A stretch of DNA of 15,098 nucleotides. It comes from Selaginella moellendorffii (Eukaryota > Plantae > Lycopodiophyta). The stretch lies in NCBI RefSeq assembly GCF_000143415.4, contig NW_003314533.1:1-15098 (forward strand). The letters run 5' to 3'. Below the pieces are notes generated by a model. That model did not search any database. It was not told the origin of the DNA and saw only the letters and a program-made list of their open reading frames with translations. Position numbers and translations under genes: made by a program. This document shows, piece by piece, positions 1 through 15,098 of the stretch (the stretch's first letter is position 1; every line of letters starts with the position of its first letter).

Positions 1-1760
1 AAAAGCCCCCATACTGGGTTCAACCAGACTGGACACAGGAATTCATTGTACAAGTAGATGCATCTGATTATGCACTTGGCACTATACTTTGCCAGAGAAA
101 AACTGATAATAGAGACCATCCAATATACTATGCAAGCCGCAGACTCTCCCCACCAGAGATGAACTATACAACCACGGCAAAAGAGGCATTAGGAATGGTC
201 TATGCACTCACCAAATTTCGACATTACCTCCTTTCAAACAAAGTCAAGATCATGGTTGATCACCAAGCACTTTTACACTTACGCAACAAGACAATACTCA
301 CTGGAAGAATTGCGCAATGGTTTCTTCTACTTCAAGAATTCAACTTTGAGATTATTCTCAAGTGAGGCAAACAACATACGCTAGCTTATCTATCCCAACC
401 ACCAAAAGAGGGTGGGCGTGTCACGAAAGGCAACAATGACTTACTTGATTCACACCTTTTTAAGGCCACAACTCAAGGAATGCTCCAGGATATTTACAAA
501 TTCTTGACGACAACCAAGATCCCAAATCACTACTTCACAAACGATCAAAGGAAACAATTCGTCTTGAGGACACGACGATATTCAGTCATGGGAGGCAAAC
601 TATATAAGCTTGGACATGACAACATCTTGAGAAGATGCACAGAATCACAAGAAGAGATTAAGGATTTACTCGATGAAGCTCACGCAAGACCATCGGGAGG
701 TAATTTTGCCAAAGAAAATTACGGCCAGGAAAGTGTTACAAGCTGGATTATGGTGGCCGACACTCTGGAAAGACGCCACTCAAGATTTTCAAGAATGTGA
801 CATATGTCAAAGAACGAAGTTTCCACCGAGGAAACAAACTCAGGAACTCAATCCAACAACAGCATTGGAACCCTTCCAGCATTGGGGACTTGATTTTGTT
901 GGACCTATAGCAAGAAGTAGCAAAGGAAATCAATACATTTTGGTCGCTACCGACTATATGACAAAATGGGCAGAAGCTCTCCCACTAAAGAAAGCCACAG
1001 CAAAAAATACAGCCAGTTTCTCTATGAAACAATTATAACACGATATGGATTACCACGAGAAATTGTTACAGATCGAGGAACACATTTTCTGAATGAGACC
1101 ATTGACATTCTTGTTAAAGAATTTATCATCAACCATAAGAAGTCAACACCATATTACCCCCAGGGTAATGGACAAGCAGAATCAACAAACAAAACGCTTA
1201 AAAACATACTCAAGAAAATAGTCAAGACAAACCTTAAGGATTGGGATGAAAGAATTTATGATGCTCTTTGGGCTTACAGAACAGCCTACAAAGTTTCAAC
1301 AAATTCTACACCTTTCAAGCTTGCTTATGGCCTTGAAGCGTTAACACCACTAGAGTACACAGTACCATCCTTGAGAATGGCCATTGAACTTGAAATTAAT
1401 CAAGAAGAATCGATCAAGAAGAATCGATCAAGAAGAATCGATCAAGAAAAGACTCGCGATGCTTGAGAAACTCAATGAAGAAAGACTAAGTGCAATATGG
1501 ACAATTGAAGCAATACAAGGTAGAAGAAAAGCTTATCACGATCGCAAACAAGTCAAGAAAAACAAAGCGCATTACAAAGTAGGAGATCTTGTATTATGGT
1601 ATCGTGGCAATGTGGATAAACTTGGAAGAAAACTCGTTCATCAATGGGAAGGACCATTCAAGATTACGAGTATACAAATCCCAGGAACAGCAAAACTTGC
1701 AACTTTAGATGATGAAAAATTGCAAATCGTTAACTTGAACAAATTGAAGATTTACAAGCA
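1..1760 (+). pseudogene. pol: Ty3/gypsy LTR retrotransposon pol, 3' part (RNase H, HHCC zinc finger, DDE integrase, GPY/F module), disrupted
   Basis: Joining frames gives KAPIL..PDWTQEFIVQVDASDYALGTILCQ..IYYASRRLS..NYTTTAKEALGMVYALTKFRHYL..VDHQAL (RNase H). Then AHARPSGGNF..CDICQR (HHCC, second H lost), WGLDFVGP / IVTDRGTHF / GQAESTNK (D,D,E) and WEGPFKI (GPY/F). The RNaseH-then-integrase order is Ty3/gypsy. Lesions: frameshifts near 17, ~715, ~1020 and 1399-1448, and a TGA at 363-365. Runs off the left edge. Confidence 0.95.
1399..1448 (+). repeat. 14-bp tandem repeat (ATCAAGAAGAATCG) x3 plus a partial copy, inside integrase
   Basis: Exact units at 1399-1412, 1413-1426 and 1427-1440, then ATCAAGAA. 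Removing two units (28 bp) restores INQEESIKKRLAML and joins ORFs 966..1466 and 1384..1947. Confidence 0.95.
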
Positions 1761-1880
1761 ACCACAAGTGCTTCACACTATGGTGGAATACCAGAAATTT
1801 CAAGAGAAAACGTTCAGAGAAATCAACGAAAACACATTCGAATGCATGCAAACACTTAGAGAAAATTTGCCTCAACAAAA

Positions 1881-2306
1881 ATGGGACCTAACCCTAATCT
1901 TGGTGGCTGTGAGAAAAAAAGAGTTCTGGGCGATAGTGCATCACTAGGGGCAAACAGTGATCAAGACTGTAGCGATTCTTGGTCTGGTGAAAGCGCAGCT
2001 TCAATGAGGACTAGAGTTGGGTCAAGGGCTTCATGCTGTCCACGGGAAGAGGAAGAACCGATAGAACTCTCCGACGAGGAGAACAAGGTATGCACAGTTT
2101 TCCAAGTGGGCAATCCGGTATGGTCTCGCGATGAGACTCTTGATGCATGGCTGCAAAAGCATCAACTCTATGGCTTTTCGGTCCTGATGACAGCTACGAC
2201 AAGCACCGACCAGCAGGGAATCGAGAGGAAGATGCACGTGGAAAAATCACGATTGAAGAAGACTTTGCCAAAGCTCTTCAGCTACCGGGGGGGAGAAGAG
2301 CATTAA
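1881..2306 (+). pseudogene. Possible additional ORF 3' of pol in the gypsy element, truncated
   Basis: 141-aa ATG-started ORF overlapping the pol tail, with an acidic stretch (EEEEPIELSDEE) followed by WSRDETLDAWLQKHQLYGF. It ends at a purine run (GGGGGGGAGAAGAG, 2287-2300) that may be the PPT. No family recognised with certainty. Confidence 0.35.
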
Positions 2307-2932
2307 AACATTTCTCATGTTTGAGTGAGTGTTGAGGGAGGTGCAATTGTATTAGCATTTAAATGAATTAAGTGCCAAGTTTGAGTTAGTTATATTCTAG
2401 ATTACAGTATTTAATAGGGGTTGGGCTTTGGCTTTTCCTTAAAACGTGATTTAATTGTAGACTATGTTAACTTTACCAGAGGAAGAGTTAGTGATCAATA
2501 TTGAAGTGATTGAATTTTTATTAGATTTGAGTTGAGGATATATTAATCATTGATGATTCTTTTTATACTTGTTATAAAGTGAGTTATGTTTTGCCATAGA
2601 AGATAAATTCATGGAAAATCGTTCGGTGGTCATTTGTGGAGCATAGCTTTATTGTGTTTGGCTTTTGGATTAATGCAAACATACTCTTCATTAGCTTTAG
2701 TATTATGATGTTTGGCTTTTGGATATGTTAAAGAGGATGTTGTGGGTTATGTTATAATTTCTTCTTTGGCATTGAAATTAGTTCATGCAAGACTCGTAAT
2801 CATTATTAGGCAAGACTTGGCTATAAGTTTTTTCAAGCTTTTGATTCTTTGCATTTTATACTCATTTGTTCCATTTATTAAAAGTTGCTAGGAAAAACAT
2901 TTTGGCTTATTAACTTTGATGTTGAAATTAAT

Positions 2933-3231
2933 TGTAGCACACCTGAATTTGGAGCAGCCCACTATGCTATGAAACAAGGGTTTGGTACACTCACAATCCC
3001 ACGAGCACTAGCTCTCTATATCCAACACCGATATGCTAAATGGTGTCTAGCATAATTTCGGCATATCGGTGGCCTAACGCGAGGAGGAGGGTACCCCACC
3101 GACTAGAGCAATGTGGAGCTTAGGCTTAGACCCAAGCTAGATGCAAAACAAAGAGTGACACAGCCCAGCGAAAGCTAAACTAATGTCTCAGGTGGTTGGA
3201 CATGCATTCCAACCACTATCCTTAATATACA
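2933..3231 (-). mobile_element. LTR-like repeat, copy A
   Basis: TG...CA ends. Aligns by eye throughout with 3795-4111 (roughly 70-75% identity, estimated). Preceded on the minus strand by GGGGGTTCCAAA (3243-3232). Confidence 0.7.
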
Positions 3232-3781
3232 TTTGGAACCCCCTATAGACCCCCCCCATGCTTTGAGGAACATATGCTTTGGGTTTTCACCCTTAGCCAC
3301 CCTTAGTACCAAGAGTTAGTTTTTGAGACTAACTCAAAACTTATTAAATATGGAATGGCGCTAAATTGTGAATTTGGACATGGGACAAACACCATTATGT
3401 TCAAAACAATCTCTACATTCTATAGATATGCCAAATTAGCAAATCTAGACACTTTCCATAATTAGCTAATAGAACGGAATAAGACCAACACAAAGGGTAT
3501 GATAGCAAGCATGTTTGGCAAACACAGTAAGTTATCATCTAAGAAATATTGAGGGACAGATCTCAATATCGCAGGAGTTCCTAACGCTAGCAAGTGCAAG
3601 CCAACAATATGAGTTTCTCATCACCGTGTCAAATATATTTGACTTAGGATTTCTTTCCTTAGTACCCTTCCGGTCTAAGTGCACATATGCTGACCAATTT
3701 CTCAAGTAATTTGGGTGGAGACCATAAAGGGAATCAGCAGTACCGACCTCCTTCTATGGCTAGGAATTGTTAAAGTAATTC

Positions 3782-4111
3782 CTCTTATACCAAATGTAAT
3801 GCACTTGAATTTAGAGCTAAACTTCGAGCTCATTGCACTATAAAATAAGGGTCTAGTACACTCTCAATCCTATGAGCACCAGCTCCCCAACACCTTCTCC
3901 TCGTATCCAGCACCTGTATGCAAAGTAGTGTCAAACAATGTCAAATATAATTTCACTATACTAGTAAGTGGTACCCTATTGACTAGCATAATATGGAGAT
4001 TGAGATTAGACTCAAGTTGGATGTAGAACAAGGAGTGACATAGCCCAATTGAAGCTAAATTAATATCTTATGTGGTTGGCCATGCAATCTAACCACTATC
4101 CCTACTATACA
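3782..4111 (-). mobile_element. LTR-like repeat, copy B (3795-4111) with adjacent tRNA-iMet PBS (3782-3792)
   Basis: Minus strand reads ...ATTACA-TT-TGGTATAAGAG, one mismatch from the canonical TGGTATCAGAG PBS. Homologous to copy A. Confidence 0.75.
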
Positions 4112-4149
4112 TTTGGATTCTCTTATGAGGCTTTAGATACTCATTTAGG

Positions 4150-5650
4150 AGTAAATAAACCTCCAGCCCACATAGCGTGAAGTAGTAATCCTAGTGGTTG
4201 ATAACCACAATGACCAAGATCTCCTCTGTCCCAACCAGTAAATCCCAGATGAACCCCAAGGTATGCATAGGTTCACCACTTGCACCAATAACCATTGCTG
4301 GTTTGAGCTCCACCAAATGCTCCAACTTGAGGCATTTTACAACTTTGTAGTTAAGGACAAACAAAATTTAGCAATGCCTCAATCTTCTGGCCATAAATCA
4401 CTATTTCCATGGTCATATGAGGTTATATTGGATTATCCTTCTCAAACATAGTGAAAACACCAATCTTTTCACTCTGAGTCTTCTTTTATTCAGCCTTGGC
4501 TCTATGCTGATCTTCATCCACTTGCTTCACAAGTAGTTTTAGGGCTCTCCAGCCATCATTAGTAGTGAGAATTTTCTGGAGCTTTACAAGAGATTCCTTG
4601 ATATACTTTGTCATTTCTTTAATTTCAGGCTTCAGTTCCTTTGGAGGAAGCTTTATCCCTTCTTCCACAGCCTTGGGCTTCTTAGCTACAGCCCTCCTAT
4701 TACATTCATTCATTCTTCTTTGCCATTCTCAAGTGTAAATTACATACAATTGCAAATCATCTTTCTTGTTGTGCTCAAAATCTAGCTCATCTATCTCTTC
4801 CAGCTCCACATTATTAGCCTCATTGAGTTCCTTGGTCATGACCATGTTAGAAATTGGATTCCTCTAGTTAAGGGGGTAATCCCTAGCCCAATGATCCTCT
4901 TCACACTTGAAACATTTATGTTGCCTATTGCTCTAGCTTTGATTCACCACCTTTTTACCAAAGGCTGCCATCTGGTGGTTCATTTTGGTAAGTTAGGCTT
5001 TTATCTCTTGTATTAGGGTTGTGGTCAAGATTTTGACCTTCTCATGCAACTTTTTTGCAATAGCATCTTCCATATTCTTTGACTAGTCTATGGATTCCAC
5101 TACCTTGTTTGCCTTAGGAATCTCCATCTCATAGAAGCATTCTCGGAGTTCAAACTCAATTACCTATGTTACTACCTATACATGTGATTCTTGTAAAGTG
5201 TTTTTCATATGATCCCTCAATGAAGTCCTCAATCCCCCCCATAAAATACTCATTGAGATGCTAATTAGTGACTATAGACTATTAGTGACTAAACCCTAAT
5301 TGCATTGCAAGCCAATTTAGAGCATCTGCAAAAGTCTGGACAGTCTCACCATCCTTCTTAGTCTTTGTGGCAAGCTCATTCGAGAGTCTTTGACTATCCA
5401 AGCTGAGAAACCAATCTCCAAATTCCATTCAAACAAGTTATGCCCAATCTCGCATCCCTTTGGATGCCCTAGAAACTCTTCCTTTGAGGAATTCCACCAA
5501 ACCCTGATTGGTTTAATGAACATTGCACTTTTAGACCATAACAAAATGTTGTAGGCTAACCAACCATTTACATGTATTTTTATAGAGAGGGTTGCCAACT
5601 AATCTTGATTCTTATATGGTTTACCATCTTCTTTGAAGTTAGATAGTTTG
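4150..5650 (-). pseudogene. gag: Heavily decayed gag and aspartic protease of an LTR retrotransposon (may extend to ~6480)
   Basis: Minus-strand fragments: IRVWWNS..KEEFLG (gag-like, ~5470-5510); KCFKCEEDHWARDYP (zinc knuckle with last Cys changed to Tyr, ~4875-4917); IYGQKIEALLNF (degenerate ALLD(S/T)G, ~4365-4400); MVIGASGEPMHTLG. Many stops and frameshifts. Confidence 0.7.
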
Positions 5651-6481
5651 AACTTGCCAAAGATAGTAGCATGTCATTTACATGGTGTAGCATGAACTCT
5701 TAACCCTCTGAACATCCTAGGAGGATGAATCAATAGTCCTTTATAAACAGACGCTCCAAACATAGAACTGTATCTTTTTGGTGAACATTTGGGTATTTAC
5801 TCAATTCAATTCTTCTATGCCCTAACAAAAACAAAGGTTCCCCTGTCAAGGAATTTAAAGGCATTCCCCAAGTCCCTTCAGCCCCCTCAGTTGCAGTCTA
5901 ATTGGTTAATATGGATGCCTTACCTTTTAGTCAAGGCGTTTGACATCTTTACTGTTGGAACTTTCTAGATGATTCAATGGTGGAGACTGCGATTTTCATC
6001 CCCCATAGTCATTGCATTCATCTTCACAGCCAAATTTTGAAGGAGCCTCATGATTCCATCCACTTCCACCTAGAGGAACCTCTTGCTGTGGCATTATGAA
6101 GTTGCTCTGTCCTCAACTTCCTTTGCCAAATGCTAGTTGGAATCCATGCCTTCTTCCTCTATGAGGCTCTTTAGCCATATGGAAGGATATAAAATCATCA
6201 TGTGATAACTTTTTTTGGTTCACTATAAATCCCTGATTTTGGAATTCTTCTTCATTAAAGAATCTAGTGCCTCAACCACCCTTTGTGGTTGTTTGAAGCC
6301 TTTTTGGTAGCTCTTGGAAAGTTGGGGAGGTCCTTAGCATTTCACCAATCCTTCTAGCAGTCTAGCTCTTGGTATGGCTATTGCTAGTGATACAGCTGTA
6401 ACTCTTATTGAAAGCTAGATAGAATCCTCTTGCCATTTCCTCTTTGGCCCATTCTTTCTTATTAATGTCTGCCCAAGTGCG

Positions 6482-7325
6482 TCACTCAAGTTTCCTCCAA
6501 GAACCACAAGAAATTGGATGAAACCCATCAAAGATGGCCAAAAAACATGAGAAAAAAATGTTTGCTATAGTGTCAGCATTGGAACATTCACTTTTGTTGT
6601 CTATAATAATGCTTCCCACTGATCCATTCCAAAATGTAATAGGCCATTGTCCTCGATTTTGTGGGCTTATATAAAGCAAATGCAGCTGCATAGGAATACA
6701 GTGTGCTAGAGTGGGATGTAAGAAGATTATGATACAGGGATATCTTGTATATGACACTACGAATGAGTCCTATGTGGCATATAACTGAAGTAGGGTCATG
6801 ACTATTCGTTTTGGCCAAAGACCTGCTTTGTACATTTCTTATAGACACTTTTGAATGAAGAGCTTAGATTAGAAAATGAGGAGACTCGGGATACCTTACA
6901 ATTGGTATCAGAGGTGTAAGAAGATTATGATACAGGGATATCTTGTATATGACACCATGTACGAGTTCTACCTGGCATATAGCTGAAGTAGGGTCACGAC
7001 TATTTCTTTTGGCCAAAGGCCTGGCTTATAACATTTTTTATAGACACTTTTGAATGAAGAGCTTAGATTAGAAAATGAGGAGACTCAGGATAGCTTCCAC
7101 GGGATCCCTGATGCCCAACTTCAGCATCTTTTGGCAGAGTACCGATACCATCTTTGCATCAGGGAGCTGGAACTCAAATTCCCTGACCACATCATTGTTT
7201 TCACAAACGAAGGCAGTGCACATCTGCCAATCCTTACTCAGATCAGAGAGGATCATCGTTATGGTGTACATATTCAAATACATTGTAAATCCCCTCCATC
7301 TTACCATATACGTTTGTGGCCTCAT
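6482..7325 (-). pseudogene. Unidentified reading frame interrupted by the mini-LTR element
   Basis: Removing the element plus one TSD fuses ORF 7068..7325 and ORF 6482..6757 in frame: ...MVSVLCQKMLKLGIRDP|TLAHCIPMQLHLLYISPQNRGQWPITFWNG... Product not recognised. Confidence 0.45.
6717..7099 (+). mobile_element. Ultra-short TRIM-like element: LTR (6717-6900), 14-bp internal region with PBS, LTR (6915-7099)
   Basis: Two 184/185-bp direct repeats with about 20 differences by manual count. LTR1 has TGTAAG...CTTACA inverted ends. Internal ATTGGTATCAGAGG contains a perfect iMet PBS (6903-6913). Flanks TGGGA (6712-6716) and CGGGA (7100-7104) form a 5-bp TSD with one mismatch. Confidence 0.9.
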
Positions 7326-7740
7326 GAAACCAATCTGGATAGTTGGCGTTTGCCAGCAGTGGCAAGGGCATCCTTCCCCTGTGTTTCTTCCACATGGGGG
7401 AGGTAGTCAAGTCTGTCATACCCACGCTTCTCATGACGTTCCTGGCTGCCAACAGAACCAGATTCTCGCCTATTTCTATGGTAGAACTGCCACTCAGTAC
7501 CTATCCAACACCTGCCTCTATGACCGAAACTCCCCGCTTTGCTGAAAGATACATCCCATCCCGAAATAGCAGACTCCTTCTCCAGCTCATTAACTCCGTT
7601 TTCCATTCTCCTATTCAGCACCTGCATTTCACAAGATTTGGAATCAGCTCTATCAGGCAAGCAGATAAATTTAAGATGCTACTTGAAATGACCAGCAGTG
7701 TAGCACCATTTGCTAAGGCTGCTATAACTGAGGAACTTAC

Positions 7741-8296
7741 CTCTGCATTCCTTGCTTAACGTAAGGGCTGGCATTTTCCAATTGTAGGTATTCTTGGTGC
7801 TTGCTGATCTTCAGGCATCTCCTTTTTATGTTGCTTGTGGGTATACTTCCTGAGATGCTAGTCATGTAAGTACTACCTCCACTTCTGTTGCATGTCTAAA
7901 GGGACTACAAACTATATACGAAAGCATTATGGTTCTTACCGGGCAAACTTTCTTGGCAGCTGGTTGTTTGTCAAGGTCATTCTGCTGCAGTCAGGAAGCA
8001 TATCCAGACACCATAGTACTGTTTGTGCTGCAGTGAACGATCTCCAGTGAGGATCATTAACAAGCAATTTGTTTGGTTCTCACTGGATGAACTATTCCAG
8101 CGTGTAATCAATCACCATATGATAAAAACTAACATGTGTTTGGGAAGTCCACTGTTGGAAGCATCAAGCCGCTAAATGGTTTACCCTGTTGTAAAATGGG
8201 AGAAAGTGGTATATATAGTGGTATATATATATAGAGGATGAAATGCAGCCATACCTGGTAGATTGAGGATTCAGAGGTCCACTGCTAGAAGCATCG
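7741..8296 (-). other. Cluster of putative small spliced exons (8296-8255, 7984-7940, 7849-7741)
   Basis: Minus-strand splice signals: ttttttttactatggcAG|...CAG|GTATGG; ctgactgcAG|...CCG|GTAAGA; catctcAG|...GAG|GTAAGT. One implied intron is 90 nt (7939-7850). I could not assemble a consistent long reading frame. Confidence 0.4.
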
Positions 8297-8431
8297 CTGC
8301 CATAGTAAAAAAAATTTCAAAGCTTACAACCGCAAAAATAATAAAATGTTGAGAATATGAACTCTGGAAAATGAAAGAGCTCGGCTGCTATAAATTCAAC
8401 AACTTTGTTGTCAGAATGGCATCCAATGCTT

Positions 8432-10369
8432 TTAGATTGCAAAGTCATCGTCATCGTCTTCATATAGGTGATCTTGAAGATCCGGCCTTGCCTGATAAAG
8501 ATAGCTTGGATAGCTTCTGGCTGCATCACGCTGAACACAATGCCAATCCGATGTACCCTGCACGCACTCTATGTTCCACCTATTCCCATCTGGAAGGTAC
8601 TGAACGAACCAGCATTTAACGAGAGGGAATCGTTGGCTCTGCTCTCGAATCACAGGCTTAGGATCAGGAACGTCTCCATAAGCGAAGTAGATGTAGTTCA
8701 TCTCACTGTGAAAAAGGCACCTGTACCTCTCGCTCTTCTCGATATGCTTGATTATAGACTCCTTGTTCCCAACTCCCTGCAGTTCGAATGCGACGGGAGG
8801 AGATCCGGCATTTCTCAAGAAAAAATCCACACGAACTCTTTTTTGGCCATGTTTATCCCTCTTCTTGGCTTCAACGAGAATGACGTACTTGTGTTTGATG
8901 TAGCCTTTCTCCAAGACAAACTTGAGAGCTAAGAGTAACTCAGACTGCCATATGTATTCAGAAGGCTGGCTGTTAGCCTCCATCGCCAAACGGTGCGGTT
9001 TAATGAAGACAACCGCAGCCTGTACCGCTTCCTCGAATGTCTCAATTGCAGGCAGCGCTTCCTCATAAGAGAACCCACAATCCCTTAGAAAAACCGCCAA
9101 TAGCATGCTTGAGCTCAGGTCCACCATTCCGCCAGCTTGACGAATGAGCATACCATCGTTGATGGCGGGCAGCACATCCACCAACTTGGGTGCAACAGAG
9201 CCTCCCGAACCAACACATTCCAGTACGAGGCCTCTTAGTTCGGCTGGGTACTTGGTAAAGTTTCCCATGATCCTATAGTAGACCTTCGAGCCAAAGACAT
9301 GACCGACAACACGGCCCAGCCTCACCGCGCCCTTCCACTTCACCACCGTGCAAATGCTCTTGTTCTCCAAGTACTCACAGCACGCTCCCACCATTCCCTT
9401 GTAACCGTTGGTCTGCTCGTGAATGCTGATGGCAATCTTCTTTACTGCCGCTTCGGTCCCTGTGCTTCGGCCGTCACCCCTGGTAAAGATTACTCCACGT
9501 TCCTGTGCATACTCGCGGAGCATTCCAACAATCTGGTCCACTGTCAAAAACTCCAAAGAGCGCGTGTCCTCAAAGCTTAAGGGAGAAATATTGTGCACAT
9601 TGTACAAAGGGTTGTAAGAATCGTGGGTCCGAGAAGGAGATGATGGCTCGCACGCAAGACCTCCACCAGGATGCGTAGCCATCCTGGCTCGTCTCTGGAC
9701 TTGAAGAAGCCTTTTAGTCTTGGCAGTTCCCACCAACACTAAACTGCGAAGATAGTAACTACCTGCTGTTTTACGCCTTGATTTGCATCCTTGCTTGATG
9801 GCTCGCATGCCAGTGAGGAAGGAGCTAACAACAGTTGCCCTCTCTATATCGTTGAGGAGCGCAGCCTCGTCTATAAACCAGACAACTTCTCTTTTTGGAC
9901 AAGAGGGGGGATTCTGGAACATTGCCTGCACCTGTTCCATGCCACCTGCTGCATCCGTCCTCTTCACAAGTCCGTTACTATCCCGCTCGATAGACTCAGT
10001 CAGCAGCCGGAAGAATTGCTTTGAGCCTTCCATATCGTTGCTCGCATCATTCGCAGCAGCTACCATGCCCTCGGTGAGCGTGGTTACAATAACACCATAA
10101 CCCTGGCTTTCTACAGCATCCGCTACGGCATACATCAATGACGACTTCCCCGACTGGAACGGACCTGTGATCAGCAGCCACCTCCAGCGCTCAATCATCT
10201 GTTGGACCAGACCGTCTATATACTCCCATGGCACATAGTAATTCACATCCGTGCTGATTGCATCCGAAGATGAGAAATGACGATCGCGCCTGTACCTTTT
10301 GGTAGTGCCATGTGGGGATTCGCATTGCTTCCGCTTACCGTCTGCTGCTTGTGCTACTGCTTCCGCCAT
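8432..10369 (-). CDS. P-loop NTPase (AAA-like/STAND-type) fused to a C-terminal restriction-endonuclease-fold domain; Crinkler/CR-effector-like; 645 aa
   Basis: Uninterrupted ORF. Walker A LLITGPFQSGKS (core 10165-10142), Walker B VVWFIDE (9886-9866), and a pre-P-loop F...D...YYVP motif. The C-terminal SEYIWQSEL..ILVE..RVRVDFFL..PVAFELQ pattern resembles PD-(D/E)xK cores. The track start at 10450 is a TTG; the first ATG (10369) lies in the context GGCGGCG-ATG-GCG. Confidence 0.85.
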   Translation of the reverse strand: MAEAVAQAADGKRKQCESPHGTTKRYRRDRHFSSSDAISTDVNYYVPWEYIDGLVQQMIERWRWLLITGPFQSGKSSLMYAVADAVESQGYGVIVTTLTEGMVAAANDASNDMEGSKQFFRLLTESIERDSNGLVKRTDAAGGMEQVQAMFQNPPSCPKREVVWFIDEAALLNDIERATVVSSFLTGMRAIKQGCKSRRKTAGSYYLRSLVLVGTAKTKRLLQVQRRARMATHPGGGLACEPSSPSRTHDSYNPLYNVHNISPLSFEDTRSLEFLTVDQIVGMLREYAQERGVIFTRGDGRSTGTEAAVKKIAISIHEQTNGYKGMVGACCEYLENKSICTVVKWKGAVRLGRVVGHVFGSKVYYRIMGNFTKYPAELRGLVLECVGSGGSVAPKLVDVLPAINDGMLIRQAGGMVDLSSSMLLAVFLRDCGFSYEEALPAIETFEEAVQAAVVFIKPHRLAMEANSQPSEYIWQSELLLALKFVLEKGYIKHKYVILVEAKKRDKHGQKRVRVDFFLRNAGSPPVAFELQGVGNKESIIKHIEKSERYRCLFHSEMNYIYFAYGDVPDPKPVIREQSQRFPLVKCWFVQYLPDGNRWNIECVQGTSDWHCVQRDAARSYPSYLYQARPDLQDHLYEDDDDDFAI

Positions 10370-10384
10370 CGCCGCCTGCGCCAC

Positions 10385-10404
10385 AACCCTAACCCTGAAC
10401 CTAA
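10385..10404 (-). promoter_or_regulatory. Telo-box-like repeats just upstream of the NTPase-nuclease start codon
   Basis: Plus strand AACCCT-AACCCT-GAACCT-AA, 16-35 nt upstream of ATG 10369. Similar to, but not a perfect match for, the plant telo-box AAACCCTA. Confidence 0.4.
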
Positions 10405-11139
10405 GAAGTATGTGCCTTTGGGGAATCCAATCGATCAATTCTTGGGCCAAATCAATCTATTGCAAGATGTGGGAGCTCAAACCTCGCAGAATTTGTGTTC
10501 ATGGTAGAAGGCAGGCCACCTTGTGTAGCAGGAGGGTACAATTTGATTTTTGTTTGAAAAAAAAATGCTTCTGAATTTGTAATTACTCCAGTTTTTGCTC
10601 ATGATTTCCAGGAAATTCAGCTACTCTTAAGAGTTCAGGAGACTATTGCTTTGCCATTCTTGCTTAGGGTACGCTACACAAATCAGGCACTTTACAATTT
10701 ACCACTTATGTGACTTATATATGTTTCTTTGTAATTACCTTTAATATTATGTATTGTGAGTACATGAAATACACCAACACTACTTTTAGTTATTTACCCC
10801 TTGTTTTTAACATTGGTTTTCTGAACCATTTCTCAGGTTGCCATCAAACAATACATAGTTGTGCTCTAACATGAGAGCAGTTGAAGAGCACATAGAGTTG
10901 CTGCATCATGCCTCTGTCTCAGGTGCTGCTGCGATCATGAGAGGAAAAATTTAGCTTCGAGAATGAAGAACCCTGCCAAAAATCTCACATCCACGAAGCC
11001 ATGATGCATTACGAGGCACACACATCAAATTCACGAATGAGACAAAGGGAAAAACACACACAAAATGTAGACCGGCCTCCCACTCTTAAACAATGAAACC
11101 AGGAAGAGGAATCAAGGACAAGCCAAGATTAACAGATGT

Positions 11140-11831
11140 GGGGGGTTTCAAATGTATAATAGAGATAGTGGGTAAGTCGAGCATAGTTGACCAATATGAG
11201 ATATGAGTTTAACTCCTATTTGTGTGCTTATTTTTGTTTTGCGTTCAGCTTAGGTCTAAGCCCAAGTTCCACACCATGTTAGCTAGTGGAGTACCCATAT
11301 CCTCGCATTAAGCTATCAGTATACTGAAATAGTGCCAAACTCTGTTTAGCTCCATTTTGAGTGTTAGTCCTGGCATTGGGATATTGGATACTCTAGGACT
11401 ATTCTAAGTTGTTTCGTGCTTCTATCTTTTCGTTCTTTGGGCTGAATGCTTGGGAGTCACTCCATGCTCCAGTTTTGTCACTCCTTAGCTTAATATTGAA
11501 GAGTTTGGCTCCGTTCCTTCATTTAATGGCTCAAGACCTTAAAACTCAAGTTCTACACCATTGTTTTTAGGATATGTGGCATGTGGCTATAACACTTGGC
11601 ACATTGAGGGTTTATGTTCCACTTTGAACTCTGGCGGATCTCCTCCTATTGTTTATGTTCCAAGGCTTTAAAACTCGGGTTCCACTCTACTATCCTTGGA
11701 CACATGGCATGTGGCATGTAGTATGTGACACGTGGCATATGGAGGGTTTATGTTCCATTTCGTGGTTATCCTATGGGAAATCACTATATGATAAAGAGTG
11801 AAAACCACATATGCTACATTTGGTATCAAAG
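11140..11831 (+). mobile_element. LTR-like repeat, copy C (about 11153-11818), inverted relative to A/B, with PBS at 11821-11831
   Basis: GGGGGGTTTCAAA-TGTATA matches the reverse complement of 3226-3243. 11231-11340 aligns with the reverse complement of ~3045-3155. Ends GCTACA (reverse complement of TGTAGC at 2933) followed by TT-TGGTATCAAAG. Confidence 0.7.
11532..11760 (+). repeat. Diverged ~95-100 bp direct duplication within LTR copy C (11532-11625 and 11660-11760)
   Basis: Shared blocks CAAG..TTAAAACTC..GTTC, TGGCATGTGGC and GAGGGTTTATGTTCCA in the same order. Confidence 0.75.
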
Positions 11832-12383
11832 GATGAGTCTCAGTGAGTACTATTTAATAAGATTGGTCAACTAGTCTCATTGTATACACAAAGATGAAAT
11901 GATGATTCAAATGGGTACATATTTGGGTGCTATAACTTCACATTTGTTCCTTGAGTATGGTGTAAGCCATAAATTTTTCCTTTCCAATTTGCTAGCTTAC
12001 TTTGTCTATCCAACCAACACTGCCTTAACTTTTAGCTAAGTTCCCTCGCCAAGGTTCCCGCCTATTGTACCAGCTCCTACTTGGTCCTACTTGGTTTTAG
12101 CTACTCACTGCACGAGCAACAGAGCGTTAGCCATCCAATCCCCCTCCCCAGGTTAGATTGGACTTAAGGTTCGGCTACACTCCCTGCAGGCACAAGTAGC
12201 CAAGCACACCAAGCCTCCAAGTTTCTAACATCCCTTGGTGCCATAAGATTTGATCATAGGACCCTCTAAATCCCAAGCCTTAGGTGCAACACATACTTTA
12301 GGACGTTGGGGCGAAACACTAGAGTCTAATGGCTCGGTATGGGTACCTCTACCCCCCCCCCGTCCCCCCGCTTCCATCCCGAA

Positions 12384-12607
12384 GGTTTAGGGTTTTAGGG
12401 TTTAGGGTTTAGGGTTAGGGTTTAGGGTTTAGGGTTTTAGGGTTTAGGGTTTAGGATTTAGGGTTTAGGGTTTAGGGTTTAGGGTTTAGGGTTTAGGGTT
12501 TAGGTTTAGGGTTTAGGGTTTTAGGGTTTAGGGTTTTAGGGTTTAGGGTTTAGGTTTAGGGTTTAGGGTTTAGGGTTTAGGGTTTAGGCGCGTTTAGGCG
12601 TTTAGGG
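12384..12607 (+). repeat. Arabidopsis-type telomeric repeat array (TTTAGGG)n, about 31 units, G-rich strand on +
   Basis: Direct reading. Variants TTTTAGGG, TTAGGG, TTTAGG, TTTAGGA, plus TTTAGGCGCG and TTTAGGCG at the right junction. Confidence 0.99.
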
Positions 12608-12767
12608 TCAAAGACACCCCGCGGTGTTGCAATCCGGCGAGATCGCGGCACCACTTTGCGCAATCCACATTCTCCATGTGCCGTTGTCGAAACGGCGTGA
12701 TCGAGAGCAAGTAGAGGAGGCAAGAGAATGAATTTTCATTCATTCGCGAGCGAGGGAGAAGACAAGA

Positions 12768-12820
12768 GACAACCCGAGACCGGTTTCGTCCTTTTTGGGA
12801 CTCATCAGCCGGGTGTAGTC
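12768..12820 (-). ncRNA. Minimal type I hammerhead ribozyme
   Basis: Minus strand: GACUAC-ACCCGG-CUGAUGA-GUCC-CAAAAA-GGAC-GAAA-CCG-GUC^-UCGGGU-U-GUC. Core boxes CUGAUGA (12808-12802) and GAAA (12787-12784) are intact. Stem II is GUCC/GGAC. Stem I is ACCCGG/UCGGGU extended by GAC/GUC. Stem III is reduced to the palindrome ACCGGU. Predicted GUC cleavage between 12778 and 12777. Confidence 0.93.
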
Positions 12821-13160
12821 GTCTAACGTCTACCCTAACCCTAGCTCGGCGCCGACTCTACTTATATTCTGGCTCTGTCACGTGGCGCGAGTCCGAGTGG
12901 CAGCCATGCGAAGTGCATGACGGCGTTGGCTCGCGAGGATGCGAACGTAGCACAGCTGGGGTTGGTGACTCCACAGCAGTGGTAGTCGCGGAGAATGACT
13001 TCGGCGGATCGCCGAAGATAGTAAGCGTTCGTCCGGCGGGTGACGTACCTTTGACGCAAGATAACTTGTAAACGTGGCATGATATGATGCATGCATTACG
13101 TCCACAATGCTTGTGTCACTTGTGCGTACCCGGCGACGAAAAACGTGGTTCACTTTGCAG

Positions 13161-13594
13161 GGAATATTCTCGGAATATTCGGTCGTTGACCGTTGACCCC
13201 GCGTTGACCGTGTGTGGACTGGGATGGTGGGGGGCCTGAGGCCACTCATACATACCCGGAGTCCAGCGGTTACATGGGGGAGAGCCATCCTGCGAGCTGT
13301 CGGCATGTGTCGCCGATGTCGAGGGAACGGCACCGTTTGAACGGAAAACATGCTTTTCCACGAGTCGTGTGTGGAGTTCAGAGTTGAAACTCACATATTC
13401 ACGATCGGAAGGAAGAGCAGAATCCAACGGTATATGCCGTTTTGACTCGGTCAACAGGGATACAGTCGGAATATTGGGGAATATTCCGTTCTGACCGTTG
13501 ACTCCGCGTTGACCGGGCGTTGACTCGGAAGGGGGGTGGCCTGGAGTGACTTGGGACATACCTGAAGTCCATCGGCCAGACCCTGGGAGTCATC
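13161..13594. repeat. Diverged ~130-bp direct repeat in the PLE 3' region (13161-13289 and 13468-13594)
   Basis: Both copies run GGAATATT..GGAATATTC..TGACCGTTGACYCCGCGTTGACCG..GACT.GGA.GG.GGG.GGCCTG..ACATACC.G.AGTCCA.CGG..GAG.CATC. Confidence 0.85.
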
Positions 13595-13658
13595 GAGTAC
13601 GCGGAGAAGGATGCAAACATAAGCTTCCGTGTCTTGCAAAGTGCGGTACAAGACGTGG

Positions 13659-15098
13659 CTAAGCTCGCGGAGGGAGCTTAGCCCTGACCAGAAACGAACC
13701 GAGGTTCGGGGAGCGTCTCCAGCACGTGATCACTCGAGGGAGTGTGTCTGTGGGAGCTTCATCCATCACCTGTTTAGGGTTTAGGATGTCCCCCAAGCCT
13801 AGCTGCGCACTGTGGAGTGTGTAGGGCAGCTTGAAGGCGAGGGGGGCCCGTCGACAGGCGTCGCTAGAGCGGCGCGAACGTGCAAGGAGAGCTTGATGTC
13901 GCTGGTCGTAGGAGATGCCGGAGAAGCAGTGGTGGAGGAAGGAGGTCGGGTATCCTCGGGCACGGAGGCGGTGGTAGAACCGCGTGCGCATGGCGTGGAA
14001 TCCATCGGCCGTGCTCTCGCGGAGGAGGTATCTCCGGAGCTCGCTGCGGATGAATGCCACTTTTTGGTGCCGTGGGTGAACCGACGTCCAGGGGAGGTAC
14101 TGGTAGGCGTTGAGCGGCTTCTGGAACGTGGACGAGTCGAGGCAGCCTGTCTCTTCAAAGCGAGGGCCTTTGAAGAAGTGGATATCGAGGATATCCAACT
14201 CTTCGAGCGAGATCACCGAGGTGATCTTGATCGAAGGACACAGCGTGCCGTATCCTCGGAGCCATCGTTCGAGGCCTGCTCGTGTACCTGTCCAAATGCC
14301 CACTCCGTCATCTATGTACCTTCGTAGATAGAAGGGCCAGTCGTTGGTGGCATGCTTGTACTCGGCTTCGAGAGAGCAGAGGAAGAGGCAAGCGTAGACC
14401 ACCGCGAAGTTGGAGCCCATTGCTGTGCCGCGGATCTGCTGGTAGATGTTACCGTCAAACTCCACGTAGTTGTGCTCCAGAACGAGGGCAGCCGCAGCCA
14501 TGAGGAACCGCGAGCGTGTGGTGTTGCCGTACTCGGCAAACACAAAGTCGCGGAGGCGTTGGAGACCTTCTCGTGTGGGGATGCTTGGGTAGAGGCTCTC
14601 TACGTCGAACGTGAAGAGCCAGCAGTCCCGCGGGAGCTGTAGGTGGAGGAGGTCCTGTAGCAGCGTGCGCGAGTCGGAAAGAAACGTTGGCTGCTTCAGC
14701 AGGATATCGTAGAGCTGGCGGTGAAGCCAACGCGCGAGGGGCTCCCACAACGTACCGATATAGCTTGCGATGGGTCGGCCCTTTATTGGCTGCTTGTGTA
14801 TTTTCGGAAGAAAATACATCATGCAAGCCTGCCGGGGTACGGCGGGCTGGTGCAGCAGGAACTGCTGTGTGGAGTTGTCGAGCCACGAGCAGCTGCGGTA
14901 CTTTGTGATGAGCTCGGCGAGGCGTTCCTGGAGGGATTTGGATGGCACGGAGGGGACCTTCACATAAACGAGTGGGTCGTTCAGTTGGCGGAGAGCCTCC
15001 TTCTGTACCAATCACGATCCAGCACCACCGCTCCAAGATTTTTGTCCGCAGGCTTGATGACGATGGATGTGTCCGTGCGAGAGAGTGGAGAGCACGCT
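13659..15098 (-). CDS. Penelope-like reverse transcriptase (partial at 5' end; 1-bp frameshift at ~15005)
   Basis: IVIKPADKNLGAVVLDRDWY (PLE DKG-type motif, different frame, ~15064-15005); YFLPKIHK..GRPIAS; FDVESLYPSIP; YQQIRGTAMGSNFAVVYACLF; RYIDD; LDILD; QKPLNAYQYLPWTSVHP; LRARGYP; RRSPNLGSFLVRAKL then stop. Confidence 0.95.

Follow-up and report, generated by a model that had tools for sequence, protein, structure and literature searches.

Telomeric Penelope-like elements (PLEs) of the kind considered here are said to have been described by Gladyshev and Arkhipova in 2007. The published description of the Athena and Coprina elements includes a hammerhead as well as reverse-complement telomeric repeats (PMC8557442, PMC6431247), and canonical type-I hammerheads were reported in the pLTRs of telomeric PLEs of Selaginella moellendorffii by Cervera and de la Peña in 2014 (fig. 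3A; PMC4209133). A pLTR promoter and trimming by paired hammerheads are known for PLEs (PMC6765202, PMC4209133), and the role of PLE hammerheads is termed unknown in reviews (PMC7761336). In dimer-dependent hammerheads, two motifs form one extended helix III with two active sites, and newt satellite 2, some viroids and metazoan PLE hammerheads have an unstable palindromic helix III, as does the motif studied here (PMC6765202). The hammerheads of fungal and protist elements are described as having a long helix III and as being active as monomers (PMC4209133), whereas the Selaginella helix III is a hexamer.

The DNA analyzed here is a stretch of 15,098 nucleotides from S. moellendorffii (contig NW_003314533.1, positions 1 to 15,098 of the forward strand), called the window. 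Its hammerhead agrees with those reported in 2014 in species, element class and position in the terminal repeat or 3′ UTR, and shares with them helices I and II, a short palindromic helix III and loops for tertiary contacts, with no essential difference (PMC4209133). A hammerhead in telomeric PLEs of S. moellendorffii is already known, the idea of dimer action goes back further still, and the window does not hold a new kind of system; the motif is presumably identical in exact sequence to the hammerheads reported then. With the endonuclease-deficient telomeric PLEs the element shares an RT without endonuclease, addition to G-rich overhangs via 3′ repeats, 5′ truncation capped by telomere, head-to-tail chains and a hammerhead near the 3′ end (PMC8557442, PMC6431247). 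In rotifer elements the repeats follow immediately downstream of the ribozyme, according to the same sources, whereas a structured tail of 170 nt lies between the two in Selaginella (PMC8557442, PMC6431247). The host repeat is TTTAGGG, unlike that of the compared rotifer-type telomeric elements. Taken as a whole, the analysis makes it quite probable that the window carries a conserved type-I hammerhead of an endonuclease-deficient PLE, which would cut as a dimer and process multi-unit transcripts.

Results

Structure of the hammerhead motif

A search of the 15 kb window with Rfam gave one match above the gathering score, RF00163 (Hammerhead_1), at positions 12814..12772 on the minus strand (40.5 bits versus a gathering score of 34, E 1.9e-07). 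The match extended over model positions 1-45, i.e., the full model was covered. A sequence-only reading of the window had proposed a hammerhead with a complete catalytic core on the sense strand of a retroelement, and the Hammerhead_1 model that it had put forward for a search indeed scored above its threshold. The minus strand of the window is the sense strand of the element. The same reading had found a single copy in the window, and no second or degenerate hammerhead could be identified in positions 12300-15098 at E values up to 10; the motif is the only hammerhead in the window.

When the minus strand is read directly, helix I consists of ACCCGG and UCGGGU (6 bp, one of them G-U), and helix II of GUCC and GGAC, closed by the loop CAAAAA. 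The core boxes are CUGAUGA and GAAA, and the helix III position is occupied by the self-complementary hexamer ACCGGU. The stems correspond to the perfect 4-bp stem II, the 6-bp part of stem I and the palindromic ACCGGU described before. The cleavage triplet is GUC, and the cut is predicted after the C, between 12778 and 12777. CUGAUGA, CGAAA, the A…U pair that closes helix III and a base other than G at the cleavage site, which make up the conserved core, are all present. The type-I core (12772..12814, minus strand) is supported by the RF00163 match, by identical copies and by covariation with three other lineages.

With a permissive threshold, the model Hammerhead_HH9 covered the longer segment 12826..12759 and revealed an extended helix I; its 42 bits fall short of the gathering score of 52. 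Its distal segment, GACGA paired with UUGUC, lies beyond an internal loop of CUAC with a UAC bulge. The extended hammerhead (12759..12826, minus strand) rests on this HH9 match, on a constrained fold and on the invariance of positions 12767-12825. The loop II CAAAAA and the UAC bulge in helix I are nearly identical to those of the HH9 family, which is known from introns of amniotes. Unlike HH9, the Selaginella motif stays at 42 bits, under the score of 52, has neither a loop on helix III nor the 3′ bulge, and is found in another genomic context.

The motif had been called minimal in the sequence-only reading. This does not hold, since it carries a loop II of the Schistosoma/HH9 type and the UAC bulge in helix I. 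The metazoan min-HHR is without helix III bases and without loop-loop contacts, whereas the Selaginella motif keeps the 6-nt palindrome, and with it four extra helix III bases (CCGG), in addition to the HH9/Schistosoma-like loops. It is classed as a canonical type-I form with loops like those of Schistosoma and HH9, and Cervera and de la Peña likewise set the canonical Selaginella motifs apart from their min-HHR (PMC4209133). By sequence and structure the motif is confirmed as a genuine type-I hammerhead ribozyme, for which cleavage is predicted.

The hammerhead lies in the 3′ UTR of an endonuclease-deficient element

Along the plus strand, AT-rich plant DNA is followed by a TTTAGGG array, by three variant repeats and then by a GC-rich retroelement in antisense orientation that reaches the end of the window. 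The TTTAGGG telomeric array (12384..12582, plus strand) separates the subtelomeric DNA from the element's 3′ end. The variant telomeric repeats, which read CCCTAAA CGCCTAAA CGCGCCTAAA on the sense strand (12583..12607, minus strand), are encoded by the element: they recur in every copy, and this argues that they were templated by the element RNA and not made by telomerase. In the subtelomeric part of the window, a 672-codon ORF at 8432-10450 (minus strand) is GC-richer than its surroundings and gave weak P-loop/AAA matches below the Pfam cut-offs, and positions 1-2300 hold the remnant of a Ty3/gypsy-type polyprotein with an RNase H and integrase region and frame breaks.

The coding part of the element is an ORF for a Penelope-like RT (13659..15011, minus strand), recognized by homology, of which the C-terminal 450 codons with a YIDD motif are present; the element continues past the end of the window. 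The ORF stops 40 codons beyond the C-terminal motif associated with the RT. The RVT_1 profile matched it at 25.6 bits, below the cut-off, and 621 RT homologs were obtained at E ≤ 1e-5. The closest homolog is an S. moellendorffii protein with 67% identity; Cryptomeria, Ginkgo, Closterium and many contigs hold further relatives. Distant homologs, including P0098 and P0105 (∼1e-47), combine the RT with a GIY-YIG domain, a combination that is a hallmark of PLEs. No match to a GIY-YIG endonuclease was obtained in the window ORF, the N-terminal part of which lies outside the window, nor in the full-length paralog P0001.

The 3′ UTR measures 1.18 kb, and the hammerhead is located 845 nt past the stop codon of the RT. 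The part between the stop codon and the hammerhead (12815..13658, minus strand) has homologs in the S. moellendorffii loci L005 and L006 and contains two direct repeats of ∼305 bp with paired GGAATATTC motifs. These pairs resemble heat-shock elements (GAAnnTTC) and are found at 13161-13182 and 13457-13478 of the window, at 7788-7807 and 7947-7966 of L001 and at 646-665, 954-963 and 1260-1280 of L006; in both families from Selaginella they occur in every 3′ UTR repeat unit and lie upstream of the hammerhead. In the Cryptomeria 3′ UTR, TTCnnGAA pairs occur at L002 3935-3975. The terminal repeat may have its promoter or enhancer elements in these GGAATATTC and TTCnnGAA pairs.

Downstream of the predicted cut follows a unique tail (12777..12608) of 170 nt, measured up to the first telomere-like repeat, which is the length of the tail to the telomere junction given before. 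The tail (12608..12777, minus strand) is predicted to fold into three hairpins (fold z-score −1.9). In two copies of the tail, a 1.64 kb insertion with a flanking duplication of ∼17 bp (ATCTCGCCGGATTGCA) is observed (L001 786-2425 and 8234-9874), at a site that corresponds to ∼12629-12646 of the window.

The S. moellendorffii assembly GCA_000143415.2 has copies of the tail with 93-95% identity on two of its scaffolds. With blastn, L006 6584-8725 aligned without a break to window 14348..12503, and L005 9731-11243 to window 13829..12625. A telomeric 16-mer within the RT frame (13772..13787, minus strand) encodes I-L-N-P-K, as judged from the protein alignment, the codons and the RT homology, which continues to 13696. 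Combining the contiguous alignments with the coding function of the 16-mer and the RT homology running through it, it is concluded that the RT body and the hammerhead tail form one element. Because body, UTR and tail belong together, the hammerhead is part of the element's own 3′ UTR. The earlier statement that the cut would detach the 170-nt tail with the telomeric repeats from the RT body is in line with the L006 alignment, which shows both as one element. Two stacked insertions joined at 13772-13787 had also been considered and were ruled out by the blastn alignments to L005 and L006 together with the protein and codon alignments.

It is very improbable that positions 12608-13787 (1.18 kb) form a separate non-autonomous, retrozyme-like element beside an unrelated RT element, with a telomeric tract between them. 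The 16-mer at 13772-13787 would be such a tract, and L006 350-1870 is exactly a piece of this kind with 360 bp of telomere before it. However, the 16-mer is in frame and encodes a conserved RT motif, after which come 40 conserved C-terminal codons, the RT homology to the 67%-identical family runs through it, and the RT end and the tail are contiguous at two other loci. The short modules are better read as 5′-truncated copies. In addition, a retrozyme needs two hammerheads in direct repeats, whereas the window holds a single hammerhead within the 3′ UTR of an RT element.

The single element lies antisense on the G strand with its 3′ end facing the centromere and adjoining TTTAGGG, and the same junction is present in L005 and L006. 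Such an orientation is that of the endonuclease-deficient PLEs (PMC8557442, PMC6431247). L006 is a scaffold end that opens with 360 bp of CCCTAAA, after which follow a 5′-truncated copy, a longer copy, several tail-only copies and a member of the second family described below, so that 5′-truncated copies capped by telomere and head-to-tail chains are both found. The host element is assigned to the endonuclease-deficient PLEs of the Athena/Coprina kind. Among the telomeric repeats at L006 8960-9360, several copies of 35-90 nt of the extreme 3′ end of the element are visible that look like aborted terminal additions.

Position of the hammerhead in related elements

A second RT family of Selaginella (P0001; L001 7744-8234 and L005 18200-18691) is 67% identical at the DNA level to the family in the window. 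It ends in the same variant telomeric repeats, and the final 114 nt of its tail match at 95.6% identity; no hammerhead was found in its 3′ UTR. Since this family attaches with the same tail and without a hammerhead, the ribozyme is dispensable for telomere attachment.

In Cryptomeria, the elements form a tandem array (L002) with a period of 4339 bp, and in each unit the hammerhead lies 420 nt past the RT stop; ∼125 nt further on comes a CTCCTAAAC remnant, and after it the next ATG. In the ENA contig L007, the hammerhead is followed by ∼340 nt and a short CCCTAAA-like tract, with an ATG 8 nt further on. In these relatives the ribozyme is always found between the RT of one unit and the first ORF of the following unit, a position that fits processing of the transcript. 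Each Cryptomeria unit also contains a segment resembling 5S rRNA ∼70 nt past the RT stop (L002 3767-3865 and 8106-8204); the Rfam scores are 38.0 bits, equal to the gathering score, for one and 32.9 bits for the other, and both lack an internal part.

Conservation and covariation

The 43-nt core is identical in the window, in L005 (11054-11096) and in two copies of L006 (1628-1670 and 8416-8458). The tails of these four copies otherwise differ by 5-7%, with 46 variable columns in 526 nt of tail. Positions 12767-12825 contain none of them and make up the longest stretch without variation. When the region is preset by the Rfam match, the chance of its being invariant is roughly 0.5-2%; the chance of an equally long invariant gap anywhere in the tail is estimated at about one in five. 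A further, diverged contig shows 19 differences in 370 nt and none in the ribozyme, and no variant was seen among the RNA-seq reads across the motif.

A structure descriptor was run over 59 kb of related elements and gave four matches, two in the Cryptomeria tandem array (L002 4119-4160 and 8458-8499), one in the Logan contig L004 (214-255) and one in L007 (2880-2922). The mean was 0.02 matches per shuffled 59 kb, and none of the shuffled matches had a palindromic helix III. The hammerhead of L004 was also recovered with the Rfam model HH9 (29.6 bits). The Rfam hammerhead search of L003 and L008-L014 gave no match.

The alignment used for covariation holds 8 sequences, only 4 of which are distinct, and is thus a small sample, in which compensatory changes occur in 8 of the 13 pairs and 92% of the cells are standard pairs. 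Changes on both sides were observed in four of the six pairs of helix I and in three of the four pairs of helix II. None of 500 shuffles matched the observed covariation values, and the score collapsed when the partners were slid by one to three columns. The columns of the core (the CUGANGA box, the GAAA box and A15.1-U16.1) are invariant in all eight aligned motifs. Covariation in stems I and II had been named beforehand as a property by which the motif could be judged, and both helices display it. Compensatory changes in distant lineages point to long-term selection on the hammerhead fold.

That the hammerhead is a decaying relic without function, which appears conserved through the youth of the copies, is considered highly unlikely. 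With copies that are 93-95% identical, few substitutions are expected in 43 nt, and some related elements are without a hammerhead. However, it is at the ribozyme that the copies have their longest invariant stretch, and the compensatory changes in distant lineages are not what a relic would show.

Helix III in monomer and dimer folds

Selaginella has ACCGGU as its helix III hexamer, Cryptomeria and L007 share ACAUGU, and L004 has ACUAGU. The consensus of the hexamer is ACNNGU, with a center of CG, AU or UA that is always palindromic. A hairpin cannot be formed by ACCGGU, since 2 bp would have to enclose a loop of 2 nt, and indeed a stable helix III never formed within one molecule in the minimum-energy folds. 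In the minimum-energy monomer (−21.3 kcal/mol), the CCGG of helix III pairs with the CCGG of helix I, which results in an inactive fold, while the hammerhead-competent monomer with open helix III has −17.5 kcal/mol.

When an intermolecular helix III of 6 bp was forced, the dimer reached −43.9 kcal/mol versus −35.0 kcal/mol for two open monomers, a gain of 8.9 kcal/mol. The minimum of the unconstrained dimer was −44.6 kcal/mol, near that of the dimer with forced helix III. The two motifs probably act as a dimer by pairing via helix III, as predicted from sequence and folding energies. Dimer action is the best reading because a helix III hairpin is impossible and because the palindromic center covaries in three other lineages. 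This agrees with the sequence-only reading, which had proposed dimer action through the palindromic stem III: the hexamer cannot close, and it stays self-complementary in the three other lineages. The pattern of preserved palindromes is described for dimer-dependent hammerheads (Forster et al., 1988; Lunse et al., 2017; PMC4209133, PMC6765202).

The same reading had stated that such dimers cleave efficiently. Since the rates of cleavage in vitro are given as low for such hammerheads, dimers included (PMC4209133, PMC6765202), this wording is too strong.

Transcripts across the predicted cut site

Stranded RNA-seq data indicated low-level transcription of the family, with the first mate on the plus strand in 133 of 133 reads. 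In most stranded libraries this corresponds to RNA of the minus strand, which is the sense strand for both the element and the ribozyme. The RNA depth was 16 and 11.2 in two bins of the tail, 4.8 in the bin of the ribozyme and 2 in the next bin upstream, whereas a DNA-like contig depth was flat, going from 24.4 to 24 between the second tail bin and the ribozyme bin. The step at the ribozyme is suggestive of cleavage, although it is confounded by the shared tail and by multi-copy mapping. Indeed, the RNA reads from the tail carry fixed differences from the window copy, and the last 114 nt are common to the second family. At 12777/12778, read ends were not reported to pile up, with an RNA-seq depth of only 2-16.

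Among the three Selaginella loci, no copy has its 5′ end at the cut site. All integrated copies span it, which implies that their RNA templates were uncut there, and the earlier proposal that the integrated copy in the window derives from uncleaved RNA fits this observation.

That every integrated copy spans the cut site would also be expected if the hammerhead were mainly a structural 3′ fold that presents the telomere-complementary repeats or recruits the RT, with cleavage being incidental, a role proposed for the rotifer Terminons; reviews describe the ribozyme fold beside the 3′ repeats as serving for attachment (PMC6431247, PMC8557442). Here, however, ribozyme and repeats are 170 nt apart, and in the sister family the final 114 nt and the repeats are retained without a hammerhead. 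Moreover, all bases of the catalytic core, like the palindrome of helix III, have been preserved in the different lineages, and a mere scaffold needs neither. A mainly structural role is therefore regarded as unlikely, and a cleaving ribozyme is the preferred reading.

Telomeric tract in the RT reading frame

The 16-mer of the window (13772-13787, minus strand) is one of several (CCCTAAA)2 tracts that lie in frame in the RT gene; others are found at L001 7613-7629 and in L002, L003 and L004. The tract encodes (T/I)LNPK, with CTA AAC CCT AAA corresponding to two telomeric repeats, and it is followed by a CWR...L.SFLV stretch that is conserved in the protein family. The homology to the second RT family does not stop at the 16-mer but extends as far as 13696. 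When the codons of five sequences were aligned (the window, the second family of Selaginella, Cryptomeria, L003 and L004), all five used the same codon in only 12 of the 145 invariant degenerate amino-acid columns. The sole run of consecutive, fully conserved codons is L-N-P (CTA AAC CCT), and the flanking ACC and AAA complete the two repeats. The codons CTA AAC CCT are identical in five lineages, though the proteins are only 45-67% identical.

In distant relatives, namely L013, the fungal Microbotryum L014, L008 with its flanks of the TTAGGG type, and L007, the ORF holds no repeat that follows the repeat of the host. The in-frame tract is accordingly assigned to the closest clade, as judged from the sequences compared. 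It may be new as a conserved in-frame telomeric repeat.

The 5′-truncated copy L006 350-1870 starts exactly past the tract, under 360 bp of telomere. From this one junction it could be proposed that the tract serves as a telomere seed for aborted cDNA, an idea that is held as tentative and rather doubtful. A cDNA that stops just past the tract would end in TTTAGGGTTTAGG, from which telomerase could continue, or which could switch to the 3′ repeats on a different RNA.

Discussion

In the mechanism proposed here, the telomere-complementary repeats at the RNA's 3′ end would anneal to a G-rich overhang and prime reverse transcription, by which the chromosome end would be extended. The RNA that serves as template for transposition would have to remain uncut at its own 3′ hammerhead. 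A lone copy of the hammerhead would be unable to take the active fold, and two copies would have to pair via helix III to cut. Both could lie on a single transcript that reads through a head-to-tail chain, or each on an RNA of its own. Transcripts with a single ribozyme would stay intact and would be fit for telomere priming.

The most likely role of the ribozyme would be the trimming of transcripts that cover several units, passing from a distal one into the neighbor on its proximal side. A promoter in the upstream terminal repeat (pLTR) could drive the downstream unit, with paired hammerheads trimming the precursor. Such processing of read-through transcripts by hammerhead pairs would amount to the copy-number-dependent switch suggested in the sequence-only reading, an idea that repeats a logic already published.

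The telomere attachment of the sister family without a ribozyme indicates that cleavage is not part of attachment. If the telomere seed were true, it would yield units of 1.2 kb that consist of a telomere-capped 3′ UTR with a hammerhead, e.g., L006 350-1870, and it would build the tandem chains of hammerheads that are needed for dimer cleavage. If undescribed, the in-frame repeat would offer a testable link between protein coding and the healing of chromosome ends. For the PLE hammerheads, the question of the ribozyme's role is sharpened by a palindromic helix III that is kept by compensatory change across plant lineages.
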